Positions 2,370 through 36,864 of a DNA stretch of 64,000 bases are shown piece by piece; within the stretch, counting starts at the first letter, position 1, and the number at the start of each line of letters is the position of its first letter. The stretch comes from Prasinococcaceae sp. CCMP 1430 (taxonomy: Eukaryota; Plantae; Prasinodermophyta). Made by a program: the position numbers and the translations under genes. The stretch lies in contig RQSC01001236.1 of NCBI GenBank assembly GCA_013416795.1, forward strand, positions 85,780-149,779, given 5' to 3'. The notes below the pieces were generated by a model. The model ran no database searches and had not been told where the DNA came from. It saw only the letters and a list, made by a program, of their open reading frames with translations.

Positions 2370-4211
2370 ATGGATGCGGACGGTCCGGTGGCCGAGCCCA
2401 CCGCAGCCGCTGCGCCTGCTGCTGCGGCGGGCCCGCCCACCGTGAGGGGCGAATTAGCCCACTGTGATAGCCTGGAGATCAGCGCAGAGGGCACTTTGCA
2501 CCTACAGGGCGCGCAGACGGTGCACGAGTACAACATCAACGCGGCAGGCATGAAGCGGCAGGTCGCGACGGGCTCCACGCCGCGCGGCCGTGTCTTGGGC
2601 GGCGCCGGTGGCGCGCCCCAGGGCAGTGCGGACAACGGGGGCGGCGCAGACGACGAAGAGGCAGTGCACTTCCGATGTCCCGCCGAGAGTCTCGTGCCCA
2701 TCGGCGAAACTATCGGCACCGGGGTGAGCTCGCACGTGCGCGTGTCCGTGCACCTCGACACCCACCGCCTGGTCGCGGTGAAGGTGATTTCCGTTTTTGA
2801 CAGGGAGCGGCGGGCGATGGTGCTCAACGAGATTCGCGCACTGTGTGAGGCGCCCGCGTCGGCGCCAGGACTGGTGGACTTCTTCGGGGCATTCTACACG
2901 CCCGAGTCGGGCCAGCTTTCGCTTGTGCTGGAGTACATGGACGGTGGCTCGCTGCGCGACCTGGCGGAGAAGGCGCCTGGCAAGAGGCTGCCTGAGTCTG
3001 TGCTGCGTCACGCAGCTCGCGCGATGGCGCAAGGGCTGCTGCACCTCCACACGCGCCAGAAGCTCGTCCATAGGGACATTGTGCGTGGACTGCCGCAGCA
3101 AAGGGCGCCTCGCTCACAGCAGGCGTCCCTCGCCGCTCGTGCGCACAACTCCTTTGCATGGCGCTGACGCGCAGGCGCCGTGCGCGCGGCGCCCACTCGT
3201 GCTCGCTCCCTCACACAGAAACCCGACAACGTGCTCATTGGCCTCGACGGGTCTATCAAAATCACCGACTTCGGCATTTCCGCGGGGGTGGGCACAGAGA
3301 GCGGCACGGCCGCCGAAATGTGTGCCTCTTTCCGCGGCACGGTGACGTACATGTCTCCCGAACGCATCAATTCCGAGCCGTACTCGTTCCCGTGCGACAT
3401 CTGGGGGGTGGGGCTCGCCCTGTACGAGTTGGCCACAGGAGCGTACCCCTACAACGCGGGCTCGGAGGGCCCCTTCCAGCTCATGCTGCAGGTGATGCAC
3501 GACCCCGCGCCGGCGCTGCCAGCGGTGGACGCCCGGAGCGGTGTGTCCTTCTCCGACGAGTTTCGGGACTTCGTCGCCGGATGCCTCATCAAGGACCCGA
3601 AGGCGCGCCCGACAGCCGCGCAGCTGCTCGCGCACCCCTTCCTGTCGCAGGTGGACGCCGCTGGACCGGGAGCGCTCGAGGTCGAGCGTGCCGAGACGGC
3701 GACATTCGTCTCGTCGGTGATCAACCCAGCGCAGAGGCTGCAGCACACCGCCGAGATGTTCGCCGAATTCTTCTACGCGGTATTCGATGACGACTCCCTG
3801 CGGCAGCGTGAGCTGATAAGGCTGTACAGCAACGAGTCGCGGCTGAGCGTCGAGGGGGAGGTCGCGGTCGGCGCGCATGCGGCAACCGCGATGCTGAGGG
3901 ACTACCGCACAGCGCTCGCGGTGAGCTCGGGGAATCGACCCATCAAACACAGGCTGCTGCACGTGGACGCGCAGCAGCTCGCGGGGGCGCACGCCGACGA
4001 GTTCGCGGCGGCCGGGGCGTGCCTGCTGGTGCACGTGCAGGGCGAGGTGTTGGCGTTGCACGCTGGCGCACATGGCGAGGAGCGCTCCATAGGCGGATTC
4101 GCCGAGGTATTCGTTGTTGGCAGCGCGGCGGCGTTCGCTGCAGGCGCACACGGCGCGGCGTGGGGAGGCGGGTCGATGCTCGTGCACTCACAAGTGCGCA
4201 GGCAGCTCTGA
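2370..4211 (+). CDS. MKK3: MAP kinase kinase with C-terminal NTF2-like domain (plant group B, MKK3-like); intron 3081-3218
   Basis: IGTGVSSHV Gly loop, VAVK, HRDI|KPDN joined across a GT-AG intron, DFG, CASFRGTVTYMSPER. The C-terminal FFYAVFDD...LYSNESRLSVEG segment is NTF2-like. The last few codons may be spliced differently. Confidence 0.85.
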
Positions 4212-4412: not shown

Positions 4413-5450
4413 TTACTGATCCAACTTGAACTCGGGCGAGAGCATGGCCTGCCGCCTGCTGCGGCGGCCCCCCGTCGTCGGCGGCGCCGCAGGAGTTTTC
4501 GCCTTCTTTGCGGCGGGCGTCTTGGCCTTGGCGGGCGTCTTGGCCTTGGCGGGCGTCTTGGCCTTGGCGGGCGTCTTGGCCTTGGCGGGCGTCTTGGCCT
4601 TGGCGGGCGTCTTGGCCTTGGCGGGCGTCTTGGCCTTCGGCAGCTCCTCGTCGAGCTCCTCGTCGGCCTTGCGCTGACTCTTCTTGGCCGCGGGCGTCTT
4701 GCGCGCCTTGCCAGCCTTAGCAGGACCAACGGGCGTCGCCGCGTCGAAGCTCACACCCTTGGCCTGCTTCGCACTCGCTTTCGGCTTCTTCGCCGCCCTC
4801 ACAGTCTCCGGCTGCTGCTGCTCTGTGTCCTCCGCGCCCTCACCCGCGCCCTCCCCCCCCGCGCCGCTGACGGCGGCCACGTACCCCCCGAAGTCGTAAT
4901 CGATGCCCACGGCGGCAATCTTCTTGCGCCGCTTGGCCTCGCTCTTGACAAGCCTCTTTGTCTGCACCTCGACCTCCTCGGCAGTGCGCTTGCGGTTGCG
5001 CCTCGCGTTGTCCAGCTTCTTCCACGGCACTTTACGGAAGGCGCGGTTTGCCCCGACGAAGGTGTCCGGGTGTACTTCCGCGTCGTCCATGACGCGGCAC
5101 TGCAGGAGCTGGTCGAACATGAGGTAGTTGTGCATGGCGCCCGCGGCGATGGCAGCCACGCCCGCGTCCTCGAACTCGAGGAAGGCGTAGTGCTTGGACT
5201 TGCCCGTCTTCTTGTTGCGGCTGAGGCGCCAGCGCGTAATCTCGCCGAACTGCTCGAAGAAGGCCTTCAGCTGAGCCTCATAGAAGCCATGCGGAATGTG
5301 CCCAACGTACACAACTCGTCCCTTCCCCCCAGGCGCCGCGGGTCTCTTCCCCTGTTTGCCTCCCTTGCCCCCCTTGCCGCCGGCGCCGGCGTCCCCCCCG
5401 ACGGGCGCGGCGGCGCCCGCGCCTTCGAGCGGCACGAAGTCGTCCGCGCG
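4413..5450 (-). CDS. NIFK: Nucleolar RRM protein of the NIFK/Nop15 family; 5' end lost in gap
   Basis: VVYVGHIPHGFYE...RLSRNKKTGKSKHYAFLEF...AMHNYLMFDQLLQC...F..ANRAFRKVPW, followed by a basic tail. Confidence 0.85.
   Translation of the reverse strand, partial: RADDFVPLEGAGAAAPVGGDAGAGGKGGKGGKQGKRPAAPGGKGRVVYVGHIPHGFYEAQLKAFFEQFGEITRWRLSRNKKTGKSKHYAFLEFEDAGVAAIAAGAMHNYLMFDQLLQCRVMDDAEVHPDTFVGANRAFRKVPWKKLDNARRNRKRTAEEVEVQTKRLVKSEAKRRKKIAAVGIDYDFGGYVAAVSGAGGEGAGEGAEDTEQQQPETVRAAKKPKASAKQAKGVSFDAATPVGPAKAGKARKTPAAKKSQRKADEELDEELPKAKTPAKAKTPAKAKTPAKAKTPAKAKTPAKAKTPAKAKTPAAKKAKTPAAPPTTGGRRSRRQAMLSPEFKLDQ
4513..4638 (-). repeat. Coding 18-bp tandem repeat x7 (KAKTPA)
   Basis: gcgggcgtcttggccttg repeated 7 times; only the last base of the last copy differs. 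Confidence 0.95.
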
Positions 5451-28767: not shown

Positions 28768-29043
28768 NNNNNNNNNNNNNNNNNNNNNNNNNNNNNNNNN
28801 NNNNNNNNNNNNNNNNNNNNNNNNNNNNNNNNNNNNNNNNNNNNNNNNNNNNNNNNNNNNNNNNNNNNNNNNNNNNNNNNNNNNNNNNNNNNNNNNNNNN
28901 NNNNNNNNNNNNNNNNNNNNNNNNNNNNNNNNNNNNNNNNNNNNNNNNNNNNNNNNNNNNNNNNNNNNNNNNNNNNNNNNNNNNNNNNNNNNNNNNNNNN
29001 NNNNNNNNNNNNNNNNNNNNNNNNNNNNNNNNNNNNNNNNNNN
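28768..29043. other. Assembly gap (276 N) in the RPN1/COPB divergent promoter
   Basis: Run of N. Confidence 1.
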
Positions 29044-29159
29044 CGCGCGGGAGGCGGGCGATCGGACGCGACGGGGGCTCGGACCACGTCCGCACGGGAG
29101 CGCCGCGAGCGGCGCGGCGCTGGGCGCGCCCCCGCCCGCCCGTCGCAGAGGAAACACTC

Positions 29160-29177
29160 TTAGGGTTGGCCTGGGCC
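29160..29177. promoter_or_regulatory. Telo-box-like TTAGGGTT next to a site II-like TGGGCC upstream of beta-COP
   Basis: ttagggttggcctgggcc about 40 bp upstream of the ATG. Confidence 0.4.
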
Positions 29178-29211
29178 GCGGCCCGGGGCGCCCCCCGTCA
29201 CGCGCGCGGCC

Positions 29212-32200
29212 ATGACGTCGCTCGTGGAGAGGAGCTGCACACTCCTCGTCAGCTATGAGAAGAGCTCGGTGCGTAGCGCGCGCCTGCGATGCCGCCGGCC
29301 CACTTCGCGCAGTGCACGCCACGCCTCGCGCGCGCGGGCGGGCTCGCGTTCCACCGGCCCTCACCGATCGACTGCCGGATGCAGCAGCCTCGACGTGTGT
29401 CGAGCCCTCGTCCGCGCCGGCGTCCGCCGCGTCCGCTCCGGACGCGCCCGCTTCGGCCACCGCGCTCTCAGCGTCATCGCCAGGGTCCCCTTCCATCTCG
29501 CACCGCCGGCTGCCCCCTCTCCTGGGGGGGGGGGGGGGGGGGCCCCCCCCCCCCGGCGCCTTCGTTTCCCTTCTCCCCTTCCGTCGCGCGCATGCGGCCT
29601 TGCGTCTGACGTAAGCGCCTGCCCCCTCGCATTTCATCGCGCCCCGCCTGCTACGCAGCAAACGATCGTGAACGATGTGAAAGGCCAGCTCGAGGAGGGC
29701 GACGCAGAAGACAAGATCGATGGTATGAAGAAAGCCATCGCGCTCCTGCTTAACGGCGAGCCGATGCCGGGCATGTTCATTACCATCGTCCGCTACGTGC
29801 TGCCGTCGGAGGACAAGACCGTCCAGAAGCTGCTGCTGCTGTACATGGAAATTATCGAGAAGACCGACTCGAGCGGCTCCATCCTGCCGGAGATGATTCT
29901 CATCTGCCAGAACCTGCGCAACAACCTTCAGAGCCCCAACGAGTACCTGCGTGGCTGCACGCTGCGCTTCATCTGCCGCCTGACAGAGGGAGAGCTGCTG
30001 GAGCCGCTGGTGCCCTCGATCATCTCCAACCTCGAGCACCGCCACTCGTTCGTGCGCCGCAACGCCGCGCTGGCGATCAAATCGATCTACGGGCTGCCCA
30101 ACGGCGAGATCCTGCTGGCGGACGCGCCGGAGATCATGGAGAACTTCCTGTCTGGCGAGTCGGACGTCAGCGCCCGCCGCAACGCGTTCCTGATGCTTGT
30201 GGAGCATGCGCGCGAGCGGGCGCTCGGCTACCTCATGAGCAACCTGGACCAGCTGGCGAACTGGGGCGACGTGCTGCAGATGGTGGCTCTCGATCTCGTG
30301 CGCAAGTCGTGCCGCGCGCAGCCGCAGGACAAGGGCAAGCTCATCAAAATCATCCTCGCACTGCTGGCGTCGGGCTCGACGAGCGTCATCTACGAGTGCG
30401 CGAACGCGCTGGTGGCGCTCTCCACCGCGCCGACGGCCGTCCGCGCCGCCGCCAACGCGTACTGCCAGCTACTCGTATCGCAGAGCGACAACAACGTCAA
30501 GCTGATCGTGCTCGACCGCATCGAGGAGCTGAAGGCAAACCAGCGCGACATCATGCAAGAGATGGTGATGGATGTGCTGCGCGCGCTGAGCAGCCCGAAC
30601 CTGGACATCCGCAAGAAGGCCCTCGACATCGCGCTCGACCTCACCACCCCGCGCTCCATCGAGGAGGTCGTGCTCACGCTCAAGAAGGAGGTGGTGAAGA
30701 CCCAGGGCGCAGGCAAGGACGACAAGAACGGTGACTATCGCTCCCTCCTCGTCCAGGCGATCCACTCGGCCGCCGTGCGCTTCAGCGACGTTGCGGGCAG
30801 CGTCGTGAGCGTGCTCATGGACTTCGTAGGCGACTCCAACACCGCCTCGGCTCTCGACGTGGTGCACTTTCTGCGCGAGATGGCGGAGACCAACCCCACG
30901 CTGCGCCCGGTCATCGTCGAGTCGCTGCTTGACTGCTTCTACCAGATTCGCTCTAGCCGCGTGTGCACCTGCGCGCTGTGGATCATCGGCGTTTACTGCG
31001 AGGGCGACGAGGCTGTGCTGCAGGGCCTCGCGACCATCAAACAGGCGCTTGGCGAGACGCCCTTTTACTCCGAGGAGGAGGAAGAGACGGACGAGGAGGA
31101 GGATGCCCCCGACGCCTCTGCTTCGCCCGGTCCTGTCGTCAGCTCGCGCCCGGTGGTGCTGGCGGACGGCTCGTACGCGACGCAGACCGCCGTCACCGAG
31201 GAGTACGCCGTCACTGGGACCACCGCCACCGCCGCGCCGCACTTGCGGACTATGCTCCTGGGCTGCGACTTCTTCGTGGGCTCGGTCGCCGCCACTGCGC
31301 TCACCAAGCTCACGCTGAGGCTGCGCGGGGGATCGTGCGCGCCGTCGGTGGCCAACGCCGAGCTTGCCGAGGTGATGCTCTACCTCGTGTGCATGCTGCG
31401 TCTCGGGGGGTCCAAGGGGCTGGCGCAGCCGATGGACGCCGACTCGGCGAACCGCATCGCGCTGTGCCTCCGCGTGCTCAGCGACCCGTCGGAGGCCATG
31501 AGCGCGGTGTGGCTGGGCGAGTGCCGAGCCGCCTTCGCTGGGATGATCGCGGAGAAGAAGGGGCGCGAGGCGGCGGAGGCGGCGAAGGCGGAGACGGCGG
31601 CGGCGACGCAGCCCGACGAGCTCATCGACTTCGTCCAGCTCAAGAGCCGCAAGGGCATGAGCCAGATCGAGATTGAGGACTCTGTGGCGACCGATTTGCA
31701 GCGCGCAACGGGCATGCTCGAGGACAGCTCCAAGGACAAGCCCCGGCTCAACAGGGTGATGCAGCTGACCGGCATGAGCGACCCGGTGTACGCCGAGGCC
31801 TATGTGACGGTGCACCAATACGACGTGCTGCTGGACGTGACCGTCGTCAACCGTAGCGACACCACCATGGAGAATCTGGTGCTCGAGCTCGCGACGGTGG
31901 GCGACCTGAAGCTGGCGGAGCGCCCACAGAACCACACGCTGGGCCCGATGGACTCGGTGGAGATAAAGGCCAACATCAAGGTCACCTCCACGGAGACGGG
32001 CGTGATCTTCGGCAACATCGTGTACGACTCTGGGCTTGACCGCAAGGTGGTCGTGCTCGCGGACATCCACCTGGACATCATCGACTGGATCAACCCCGCC
32101 AGCACCGCCGACGTGACCTTCCGGTCCAAGTGGGCTGAGTACGAGTGGGAGAACAAGGTTGCGATCAACACGTCCTTGACCGACGTGCGCCAGTACCTGG

Positions 32201-32463
32201 ACCTGATTTGCACGTCCACCAACATGGGCTGCCTCACGCCCGAGTCGCAGCTCGAGGGCGAGGCGGGCTTCCTCGCAGCCAACCTGTACGCGAAGTCCGT
32301 GTTCGGCGAGGACGCGCTCGTCAACCTCAGCGTAGAGAAGGGTGCCGATGGCAAGCTCTCCGGCTTCGTGCGCATTCGCAGCAAGACGCAGGGCATCGCC
32401 CTGAGCCTCGGCGACAAGATCACGCTCAGGCAGAGCGGGCGCGGCACGGCGGCGGCGCTGTGA
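29212..32463 (+). CDS. COPB1: Coatomer subunit beta; intron 29269-29658
   Basis: CTLLV, LLLLYMEII, MILICQNLRNNLQSPNEY.RGCTLRF, QLTGMSDPVYAEAY, GFLAANLYAKSVFGEDALVN, RIRSKTQGIALSLGDKI. Confidence 0.97.
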   Translation: MTSLVERSCTLLVSYEKSSVRSARLRCRRPTSRSARHASRARAGSRSTGPHRSTAGCSSLDVCRALVRAGVRRVRSGRARFGHRALSVIARVPFHLAPPAAPSPGGGGGGAPPPRRLRFPSPLPSRACGLASDVSACPLAFHRAPPATQQTIVNDVKGQLEEGDAEDKIDGMKKAIALLLNGEPMPGMFITIVRYVLPSEDKTVQKLLLLYMEIIEKTDSSGSILPEMILICQNLRNNLQSPNEYLRGCTLRFICRLTEGELLEPLVPSIISNLEHRHSFVRRNAALAIKSIYGLPNGEILLADAPEIMENFLSGESDVSARRNAFLMLVEHARERALGYLMSNLDQLANWGDVLQMVALDLVRKSCRAQPQDKGKLIKIILALLASGSTSVIYECANALVALSTAPTAVRAAANAYCQLLVSQSDNNVKLIVLDRIEELKANQRDIMQEMVMDVLRALSSPNLDIRKKALDIALDLTTPRSIEEVVLTLKKEVVKTQGAGKDDKNGDYRSLLVQAIHSAAVRFSDVAGSVVSVLMDFVGDSNTASALDVVHFLREMAETNPTLRPVIVESLLDCFYQIRSSRVCTCALWIIGVYCEGDEAVLQGLATIKQALGETPFYSEEEEETDEEEDAPDASASPGPVVSSRPVVLADGSYATQTAVTEEYAVTGTTATAAPHLRTMLLGCDFFVGSVAATALTKLTLRLRGGSCAPSVANAELAEVMLYLVCMLRLGGSKGLAQPMDADSANRIALCLRVLSDPSEAMSAVWLGECRAAFAGMIAEKKGREAAEAAKAETAAATQPDELIDFVQLKSRKGMSQIEIEDSVATDLQRATGMLEDSSKDKPRLNRVMQLTGMSDPVYAEAYVTVHQYDVLLDVTVVNRSDTTMENLVLELATVGDLKLAERPQNHTLGPMDSVEIKANIKVTSTETGVIFGNIVYDSGLDRKVVVLADIHLDIIDWINPASTADVTFRSKWAEYEWENKVAINTSLTDVRQYLDLICTSTNMGCLTPESQLEGEAGFLAANLYAKSVFGEDALVNLSVEKGADGKLSGFVRIRSKTQGIALSLGDKITLRQSGRGTAAAL

Positions 32464-32643
32464 TGATGTGACATATATAGACCTTCTCCGTCTGTAAGCG
32501 TGGGGCTTTCGCTCGCACACCGCGCGCAGCCGCGCGCGCGGCCGTCGCTGCTTTTTGCGCGAGGCTGCGGAGACAAAGTGGCATGGAGACCCCCAGATAA
32601 TTACTGCGAGAGCATGCTGCTGGGACGACGCGGCGGCGAGCGC

Positions 32644-33544
32644 TTACTCGGCCTGCACGGCGGCCTCGGCGAAGCAGATGTCCGGGGTGCGGTTCGCGAG
32701 CGGGCCGTGCGCAGTGCGAAGCTGCGCGAACACGCCCTGGGAGAGCATGCGGCCCTCGGCCTTCCACTTGAGGTAGTCCTTGCGCAGGTACTTGGTGAAG
32801 CCCCAGTTGCGGCTGGTCACGATCTTCTGCCTGCCCGCGAACTTGAACTTGGCACGACGGAGCGCCTCGTGGGCGGCCGCCTCGTTGCTGTCCTTGGTGC
32901 GCACCGAAACGAGCACCTGACCGATCGCCACACGCGCGCAAGTGCCCTGCGCCTTGCCGAACGCGCCGCGCATGCCGGTCTGCAGACGATCCGCACCGGC
33001 GCACGAAAGCATCTTGTTGATGCGGAGCACGTGGTAGGGGTGCACGCGCACGCGGATGTGGAAGGCATCCTTGCCGCAGTACTTCACCATGTACTTGTTG
33101 CACGCCACACGGGCGGCCTCAAGCGCCTCCGAGCACACGTTCTCCTTCTCCCAGGACACGAGGTGCACGCAGCAGGGGAACTGGTCCACGCCGGCCCTCT
33201 TGGCGCCGCAGTCATAGATGCGGATCTTGGGGTCCGGCACCGAGCGCTGCACAGCCGATCGCGCGGAGCGGCGGGGTCAGAGGCCGCGCTGCGAGCACGC
33301 AGGGGAGATGCACGGAGTCCCCGCGCGCGGCGCACGAAGAGCTCCCCGGGCGGCGAGCGCGGCGAGCACCGCGAGAGGGCAAGGGTGCAAAGGAAGAAAA
33401 AAAAGGGTGGGTGCGGGTGCTCGCGAGGCGCGCGCGCGCGCGCGGGGCGCGCGCGCGTGTCCCTCCTCGCGCGCGCGCGACGCACCACAAAGCGCGACTT
33501 GGGGTACGGCTTGTTCTTGATCACGCGGTAGCAGCGCGCGGGAC
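32644..33544 (-). CDS. RPL10: 60S ribosomal protein L10 (uL16); exons 33486-33544 and 32644-33246; first micro-exon not located
   Basis: [19 protein letters not shown]|[12 protein letters not shown]...EALEAAR...[30 protein letters not shown]. Confidence 0.95.
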
Positions 33545-33600
33545 CTGCGGGCGGCGGGCGGGCGGCGGGCGGCACGGGTCAGCGGCGCGCCCACGACAAA

Positions 33601-33667
33601 GTGTGTGTGTGTGTGACACTGTGCGTGTGTGTGTGTGTGTGTGTGCGCACGCGCGTGTGTGTGTGTG
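33601..33667. repeat. Interrupted (GT)n microsatellite in the RPL10 5' intron
   Basis: Several gt runs. Confidence 0.9.
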
Positions 33668-34213
33668 CCTCTCCTCCCTGCCGCGCAGTGGGTCGAGCGG
33701 GATGAGGGGGGTGGGGGTGGGTGGGGGCGTTCGCGTCGCGAGCCGCTTCTACCCCGCGCTCGCGGCCCAACGGCTCGCGCGCCGCGCCCTCGCGCGCGCC
33801 GGCCCCTCGGCCCTGGGATTCCACGTCCGCGAAAAACACGCATGGATTCAACGTACAGTCTTTCGAACAACATACCTTTCATTCCAAATCGAATTCGCAC
33901 GCTATCGCATTGTGATACTGGAATCCCTCGTATCCCCACACGCCCATGGCGGCGGCGGCCACGGAGCCTCCCGATCCCGTGTCTGGCCTTGGCGAGGTAC
34001 TCTCGTTTATGAACACATCACATGTACCAACGGGAGATCTACACACACCGATGCGATGATGGCTCTCATTTTGACCTGCCGATCTGTCCCGCGCGCGCGC
34101 CGCCGCGCGGCGGCGCCGCCGCGGCCCTCCGGCGGCGCCCTTTCGGAGGCTTTTCCCACGAAAACCCGCAAAGGCGGGCGGGCGACGCGTGCATTGCGAC
34201 CTACGCTCCTTGT

Positions 34214-34666
34214 ACAAGATACCGGGGCGCCCGGCTGCGGCCGGGCGGGTGGAGCCCGGAGGTGTGTGCCGGGTGGCCGGGCCGAGCGCGCGGCAACCCT
34301 AGCTCGCTCGCTCGCGAGAGCGCGACTGAACCCGCTGCCTAGCGCGACGAGGGCGGGCCCGGCGGCGGCCGCCGCCGCTGTGGCCAGCCAGCCGGGGGGG
34401 GGGAAACACCACCGGCGAAGAGGATTCGGGTTCGGGTTGGAACCGATGCGCGCGCAGGCGCGTGGACTCTGACCTCGGAGGAGGTGGGGGACTTCAGTTC
34501 GTTTTGACGAGGATCCACACATTTGTGTGTGCATACAGTTGTTCTATGGCCCCGCGGGCCGACGCCGGCCCGCCCACCTCGGGCCTCCACACACCCGGGT
34601 GGCCGGGCCGAGCGCGCGGCAACCCTAGCTCGCTCGCTCGCGAGAGCGCGACTGAACCCGCTGCCT
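34214..34666. repeat. Composite duplication: 55-nt unreversed-complement pair (34214-34268 / 34540-34594) followed by a 72-nt identical direct repeat (34269-34340 / 34595-34666)
   Basis: Base-by-base comparison; both parts share the same 326-bp offset. Confidence 0.95.
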
Positions 34667-34986: not shown

Positions 34987-36864
34987 TTAGAGGACGTCGA
35001 CGAACTGCGTCGGCTTCTTCGGGTCGATGCGAATGCTCGACGGGAGCTTGCCCTCCTTCTGCATCTTGAGCACGACATCGCGCACCTCCATGTTGACTCG
35101 CACAGCCTTCCGGCAGTTTTGCGTGCGCGTATGGTAGTTCTGCGCCCACAGCAGAAACCTGTAGTCGGCCTGGTAGATGCCCGACACGTGTTGAAGCAGG
35201 TGCCTGACCCACTCCAGGAAGTCGACCTTCTCGGGGCGATCCGGGTCGCGCCACTCGCTGGGGTCGACGACCACCCCGGAGTCGAGCTTAATCTCGTCGA
35301 TGAAGAGGTGAGGGAAGGCGAGCTTGGCCAGGAAGAGCTCCCTCTCGGAGACGGCCCCACTCGCCGCGGGCTGCGGCTGCCTCCAGATGGCGTGGGCGAC
35401 GCCATCTTGCTGACGCGCGCGCGCGCGGGCGCGGCGCCCGCGGTCCTCCACGCCGAGCTCTTCGAGCAGCATGTCCCGCTCGGTGTCGTAGACACCGCGC
35501 TGGTCGTCGAGGAACAGCCGCACGGTGTCATTGCACGCTGCATCGTCGTCGGCGGCGTCGGCGCTGTAGTCGACGGGGCCGGGCGCGCAGCACGTCGCGG
35601 CCGCTGCGCCATCCTCGCGGCTCTCCGGGCCTCCCGGGACGGGCTGCAGCATCTCGTCCGCGACGAACTCACCCGAGCCGTCTTCCGCTCGCTTCCAGAG
35701 CTCGTCGACGTTCTCGGCAGAAACCTCGATGCCATGGTACTTGAAGGCCTTGCAGTCGTTCAGCTCGTCGAGGTATCGGCACAGCACCGGGACTCGCACC
35801 GTGGCGCGCTTCTCGGCTGCCTCGGCCGCCGCGTCGTTGGCCGAGGGGGACCACAGCACGAGCACGTTGATGCCTCGCATCGAGATGCGAGGAATCGCCT
35901 TGAGCAATTGCATGTCATTATGCATGCAGCAGAAATGACCCTTGCCTGCGGGCATGCCCCTGGCCCCGAAGCGGCCGATGGAGCCCATGACGACGAGGGG
36001 CGCCAACAGCACCTGCTCGCCCGCTGTCAGCCGTGGCAGGCGATTCCACCAGGCGTCGCGCAGCTGCGATGGCAGCACGAAGCCGATGCCGTTGTCGGGC
36101 GAAAGCCTGGGCACCTTGCCGGCGCGCACAGCGGCGTTGCACAAGTTGCAGAGGGCCTTGCCCAGGTGCAGCCCCGTGAGCTTAATGTGCGCGCTCGACC
36201 GGCCGCAGCGCGAGCAGTGCGGTGTGCTGGCCGCAAAATCGAAGGCCGGCTGCTGGACGAGGCGCTGGGCGACGAGCAGCGCGTTGAAACGCGCTGCCAT
36301 CTCTCGAAGACACGGCGGCACGTCCTCCGGCTTGGCGTAACGCCCGGCGGAGAGCAGTGAAACAGCTTGGTCGAGCGTGAGCTGCGGCAGTTCGGGGAGC
36401 CTGCCCCGCGCGCCGTCCGCGCGCTGCTTGCCGCGCGTGACCGACCAGCCGGGCTGCTTGCCGTCGTAGAGGTCAACCACGGGATCTCGAACGGCGGGCC
36501 CAACCCACCCCTGCTGCTCCTCGACCCGCGGGTCCTCGCGGAGCGCGGCCCGAGCTTGCTCGAGAAGCGCCCGCGCTTCGGGCGGAGGTGCGTCGCCGAG
36601 TCGCTCGGCCACGACGCGCGCGAGGTGCAGGTAGAACTGCTTGGGAGGTAGAGCTGCTCCGTGCGCGTGCGCGCGCGTCGCGGACGAGGTGCGTGCCTGC
36701 CCGGCGGCCGAGGTGGTCGCTGCCAGGTCGTCGCCCAGCTGGGCGACCGATGACGTGGCTGCCAGGCTGTCGAACTGGCCGCCACGCCCTCGGCTGCCAG
36801 ACTGTTGGCGTGCGGTGGCGGTCACTGCAGCGACGGGCGGGGCGCGCGTGCCCGCGATGCGCAC
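34987..36864 (-). mobile_element. Truncated Helitron2/Helentron-type Rep N-terminal ORF (DUF6570-like plus start of Helitron_like_N)
   Basis: CSRC...CNLC..GKVPRLSPDN..LP.QL..LTAGEQVLLA..GKGH...D....IPR...VRV..L...Y.GIEVS; E..LAKLAFPHLF...RPEKVDFLEWVRHLL....GIYQADYRFLLW..N...R. The HUH Rep motifs and helicase are absent. Confidence 0.7.

Follow-up and report, generated by a model that had tools for sequence, protein, structure and literature searches.

Inverted repeats, palindromes and, among H-DNA motifs, mirror repeats are natural structures in which symmetry relates two nearby segments. The locus described here has the same general arrangement, but the two members of its pair, each 55 nucleotides (nt) long, are pure complements at all 55 positions when read in one direction, a relation that is not known from any natural repeat class. 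Genome assembly generates a second group of similar structures. The ends of SPAdes contigs can be repeated over 55, 77 or 127 nt, lengths that are as exact, odd, fixed and k-like as the one found here, and the terminal k-mer overlaps of de Bruijn assemblers likewise sit at the borders of repeats and arise from the output of graph paths. However, the known de Bruijn artefacts are direct or reverse-complement duplications of a k-mer, whereas the block at this locus is complemented without reversal. A third related phenomenon is the decoding shift of SOLiD reads, which shares the ability to turn a stretch of sequence into its same-direction complement.

Positions are those of the window, the whole stretch of 64,000 nt that was analyzed. 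Block X, the form of the 55-mer present in copy A, occupies positions 34214-34268 of the forward strand and is followed immediately by copy A of a 72-nt repeat, R (34269-34340, forward strand). After a spacer of 199 nt (34341-34539, forward strand), the form complemented without reversal, comp(X), is found at 34540-34594 and is followed by copy B of R at 34595-34666, both on the forward strand. The preliminary description of this stretch had claimed a same-direction complement that runs, in both of its copies, into an identical 72-nt repeat at a common offset of 326 nt. Both claims were found to be exact. The in-place complement holds at 55 of 55 positions and the two copies of R are 100% identical. 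The block measures exactly 55 nt, and because copy A and copy B have the same flanking bases (a T on the left and a C on the right), the complement relation is not extendable in either direction. A position-by-position profile at the 326-nt offset passes from background to a directly identical dinucleotide (GT), is complementary throughout the next 55 nt and directly identical throughout the following 72 nt, and returns to background. Background identity at this offset is 24-30% in the direct and 25-32% in the complement comparison. The spacer stays at that level (24-27% direct, 27-32% complement) and resembles the sequence that flanks copy A only in its final 2 nt (GT). A Markov test of "naturalness", which compared copy A with copy B as the altered form and had a power of only 76-86%, gave scores close to zero with a changing sign.

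To place the pair among other symmetries, the window was scanned all against all with four letter maps, each of them applied with and without reversal, which gives eight classes of symmetry. The 55-nt pair was the sole complement-only match of at least 16 nt outside low-complexity sequence in the 64 kb; the remaining matches of this kind and length consisted of (GC)n, (GCC)n or homopolymer runs. In simulated 64-kb windows (n = 20), complement-only matches reached at most 16-21 nt. A search of the window with the 55-mer in strong/weak code found only two sites, 34214-34268 and 34540-34594, and none in 100 shuffles. Approximately 1e-21 such 55-mers would be expected, in agreement with the earlier statement that the role of chance is negligible. 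Block X matches its own reverse at just 13 of 55 positions and its own reverse complement at 24 of 55, therefore the pair is not accounted for by an internal symmetry of the 55-mer. A natural inverted repeat or palindrome was also considered and rejected, as copy B matches the reverse complement of X at only 13 of 55 positions. The same outcome was reached for a natural mirror repeat of the H-DNA type, given the low identity of X with its own reverse and a match of 24 of 55 between copy B and the reverse of X.

An exact relation of this kind could in principle be real. The deposited sequence contains both forms, which is the sole support for a genuine origin through an unknown mode of parallel-strand copying or through the retention of a parallel-stranded pairing element. 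However, every known templated synthesis is antiparallel and, since we know of no polymerase that copies a template in parallel orientation, a same-direction complement would have no biological route. Furthermore, the length of the block matches a common assembler k, the composition of the 55-mer at 34214-34268 (76% G+C) is unfavourable for parallel duplexes, and the locus has neither coding nor structural context. It lies between two reverse-strand features, a ribosomal protein gene (32644-33252) and an open reading frame (34987-36864), and does not code for protein itself, since the values of GC1, GC2 and GC3 are approximately equal in every frame. A real sequence is thus extremely improbable. 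The same very low probability is given to the corresponding picture of the living cell, in which a G+C-rich 55-nt segment would have been copied to its same-direction complement beside a Helitron-like remnant; this would require synthesis or repair templated by a parallel-stranded intermediate, for which no biological precedent is known.

The remnant in question is an open reading frame (ORF) on the reverse strand (34987-36864) that ends 320 nt from copy B. Its coding bias is strong (GC3 0.85), and it matches the Pfam family DUF6570 marginally (E 1.3e-5). A word-index search for relatives of this ORF was blank, and an exhaustive HMMER search of 1.84 billion representative proteins found only four. 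The four include two Tara metagenome fragments of about 90 amino acids with approximately 70% identity. One of the four, P0135, carries DUF6570 together with Helitron_like_N, which identifies the neighbouring ORF as a truncated Helitron-like gene. The earlier remark that the block lies beside the remnant of a rolling-circle transposon is therefore sustained.

The nature of the assembly is relevant to the origin of the block. P. coloniale provides the reference genome for a whole green-plant phylum, and the assembly presented in the main text of its genome paper has 22 chromosomes and was built from PacBio data with NextDenovo (PMC7455551). The reporting summary gives GenBank RQSC00000000 and lists PacBio data as well as Illumina HiSeq 2000/4000 libraries, which are paired-end (170 bp and 250 bp) or mate-pair (2-20 kb), but no SOLiD data; its software list includes SPAdes 3.10.1, SSPACE 3.0, GapCloser 1.12 and MeDuSa 1.6 (PMC7455551 supplement). 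The window contains N gaps of 631, 500, 276, 56, 1, 1 and 1 nt, which would be expected if short reads had been assembled and scaffolded, but not in the 22-chromosome PacBio assembly. The flanks of all seven gaps were checked for 55-nt overlaps and none was found.

Taken together, the observations indicate that the complemented 55-mer is very probably an artefact of some kind and not biology. The window probably stems from the scaffolded assembly of short reads from Prasinoderma coloniale CCMP1413, and we propose that the block was generated when a repeat path was written out. In a de Bruijn graph with a k of 55, a value suggested by the length of the block, a repeat of 127 nt (55 + 72) would be one edge of 72 steps, and the first 55 nt of that edge would be its start vertex. 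The path would have been written twice, with the start-vertex k-mer once correct and once complemented but unreversed. In a 2-bit code for the bases, the complement is obtained by inversion of the bits and the reverse complement by inversion plus reversal, so the error would consist of a skipped reversal; seen from the opposite strand, it would appear as a reversed, uncomplemented block. The real genome most likely has a plain direct repeat of 127-129 nt, with its copies 326 nt apart, or a single copy.

Several features of the locus bear on this proposal. The edges of the block are sharp and its length is an odd 55 nt, as in a k-mer-sized de Bruijn artefact. It also abuts the exact 72-nt repeat (55 + 72 = 127), as would a block at the border of a repeat or at a graph edge, and it is preceded by the 2-nt GT that both copies share. 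If this leading GT belongs to the true repeat, the block sits 2 nt off the first k-mer of that repeat, which counts against the proposal. For reads shorter than 150 nt the largest default k of SPAdes is 55; the k used and the read length are absent from the reporting summary. With 150-nt reads SPAdes would add a k of 77, which would count against a k of 55. No bug of the complement-without-reverse kind is, to our knowledge, documented for SPAdes, and a full-text literature search for complement-only artefacts produced no relevant description, only designed control sequences. A software artefact in which a k-mer is complemented without being reversed had been the explanation preferred in the preliminary description, and it receives circumstantial support from the exact 55-nt length and from the presence of SPAdes 3.10.1 in the software list. 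That SPAdes is the tool responsible has about an even chance of being correct.

The artefact could instead have been introduced at a step that follows the assembler, such as gap filling by GapCloser, extension or merging by SSPACE, a custom script or a file conversion. GapCloser and SSPACE are both in the software list of the project, and gap filling had been suggested from the outset. The N gaps nearest to the pair are at 29043 and 36894, and there is no N remnant within 2 kb; nonetheless, a gap that was filled completely would leave no N. The 55 + 72 geometry better matches a graph edge, and a 55-nt unit is, as far as known, foreign to these tools, since GapCloser uses an overlap of at most 31 and SSPACE overlaps of 15-32. 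A later step is therefore a possible but rather doubtful source, and gap filling in particular is unsupported and the less likely option.

An error in the decoding of SOLiD colour space, which had also been raised, would act differently. Two-base encoding assigns one and the same colour string to a sequence and to its complement, and a wrong starting base yields one of three letter-swapped versions of the true sequence, the complement among them. However, the platforms listed for the project are only Illumina and PacBio, the two other swaps (A<>C/G<>T and A<>G/C<>T) match only (GT)n and poly-G in the window and leave no other trace there, and such an error would not yield a length fixed at 55 nt. 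This explanation was rejected, and its probability is minimal. It is slightly less improbable, but still very unlikely, that the block entered the sequence once it had been deposited, either during data handling or as an insert placed there deliberately as a test; against it stands the location of the block, precisely at the border of the repeat. The k-mer-sized assembly artefact is thus the reading that is followed here.

Independent contigs were sought that could show the locus in another assembly. Thirteen were compared: 11 that carry the neighbouring genes (Tara Oceans scaffolds in ENA, and Logan), found by exact-protein look-up with exon 2 of a coatomer gene and with ribosomal protein uL16, plus L012 and L013, the contigs of distant relatives that came from the search with the Helitron-like ORF. 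The 11 contigs are 99.5-99.9% identical to positions 29044-33599 of the window. Where the wild contigs differ from the window, the mismatches have no complement bias and form shared haplotypes. None of the 11 contigs follows the window past 33598/9, next to a (GT)n tract, where they have either ended or diverge, and three Tara contigs share another continuation past this point that is found nowhere in the 64-kb window. The contigs are from wild relatives that are structurally different to the right of 33598/9, and for that reason they provide no test of the 55-mer locus. The break at 33598/9 can be explained either by a strain-specific segment, which would include the Helitron-like ORF, or by a scaffold mis-join at the microsatellite. 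L012 and L013 share only positions 35077-35285 with the window, and a search of both for X or R found nothing similar. A look-up with the ORFs that span block A and block B and with the Helitron-like ORF matched no record, and two scans of JGI metagenomes, one for the core of R and one for the sequence to the left of copy B, were both blank. Three other large ORFs of the window were also looked up, and their exact products were absent from the record.

The comparison with the independent contigs produced some additional observations. The region of divergence in the window is 33598-33670, and the corresponding contig parts are L002:4074-4244, L003:1-123 and L009:1-57. The tail of one of these Tara scaffolds (L002:4110-4244) is strongly A+T-rich when compared with the alga, which has about 68% G+C, and may be a chimeric metagenome join. 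At positions 29648, 31228 and 32358 the base in the window is found in none of the independent contigs that include the site (7 of 7, 9 of 9 and 11 of 11 differ, respectively). These differences are either fixed in the cultured strain or errors in the consensus.

The last feature that the window shares with independent contigs is the gene for uL16 (RPL10), on the reverse strand at 32644-33252. Upstream of the 55-mer locus there is also a two-exon coatomer-beta gene. Its exon 2 is identical at 934 of 936 positions to the Prasinoderma coloniale gene model PRCOL_00005009-RA, which assigns the window to this species, and is also found in MMETSP. The first part of this gene (29212-29652, forward strand) includes a short first exon (MTSLVERSCTLLVSYEKS...) followed by an intron, and the large exon starts near 29653. 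An N gap (28768-29043) is located just upstream of the first exon, and the contig L001 aligns directly after this gap at only 96.6% identity.

The complemented 55-mer is most likely not a biological feature, and its value would be that of a warning on this version of the assembly. If the assembly carries other 55-nt complemented blocks at scattered sites, those in unique sequence would be invisible. Such blocks would keep the length, the frame, the G+C content and GC3 while they scramble about 18 codons, and they can create false stop codons (e.g., ATC becomes TAG). The errors would then be passed on to the gene models, mutation calls and repeat analyses that are based on this version. More generally, when scans of raw sequence reveal an "impossible" symmetry with a fixed, odd length, the finding indicates the assembler and not the organism.

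The coding sequence of the window was scanned for hidden blocks of this type by looking for ORFs that become fused when 55 nt are complemented in place. The scan yielded five candidates for a hidden 55-nt complemented block in this coding sequence, and none was real. Three of them were antisense frames, and another, at a stop codon at 3165, was an in-frame intron of a kinase gene. This protein-kinase gene (approximately 3078-3220, forward strand) is interrupted within its catalytic loop, between HRDI and KPDNVL, by an in-frame intron with a length of about 46 codons, and the in-frame stop at 3165 lies inside this intron. Another feature of the window is a perfect tandem array at 4512-4637, which consists of seven copies of an 18-nt unit (126 nt). 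The G+C content around the array is lower, and an N gap follows after about 800 nt.
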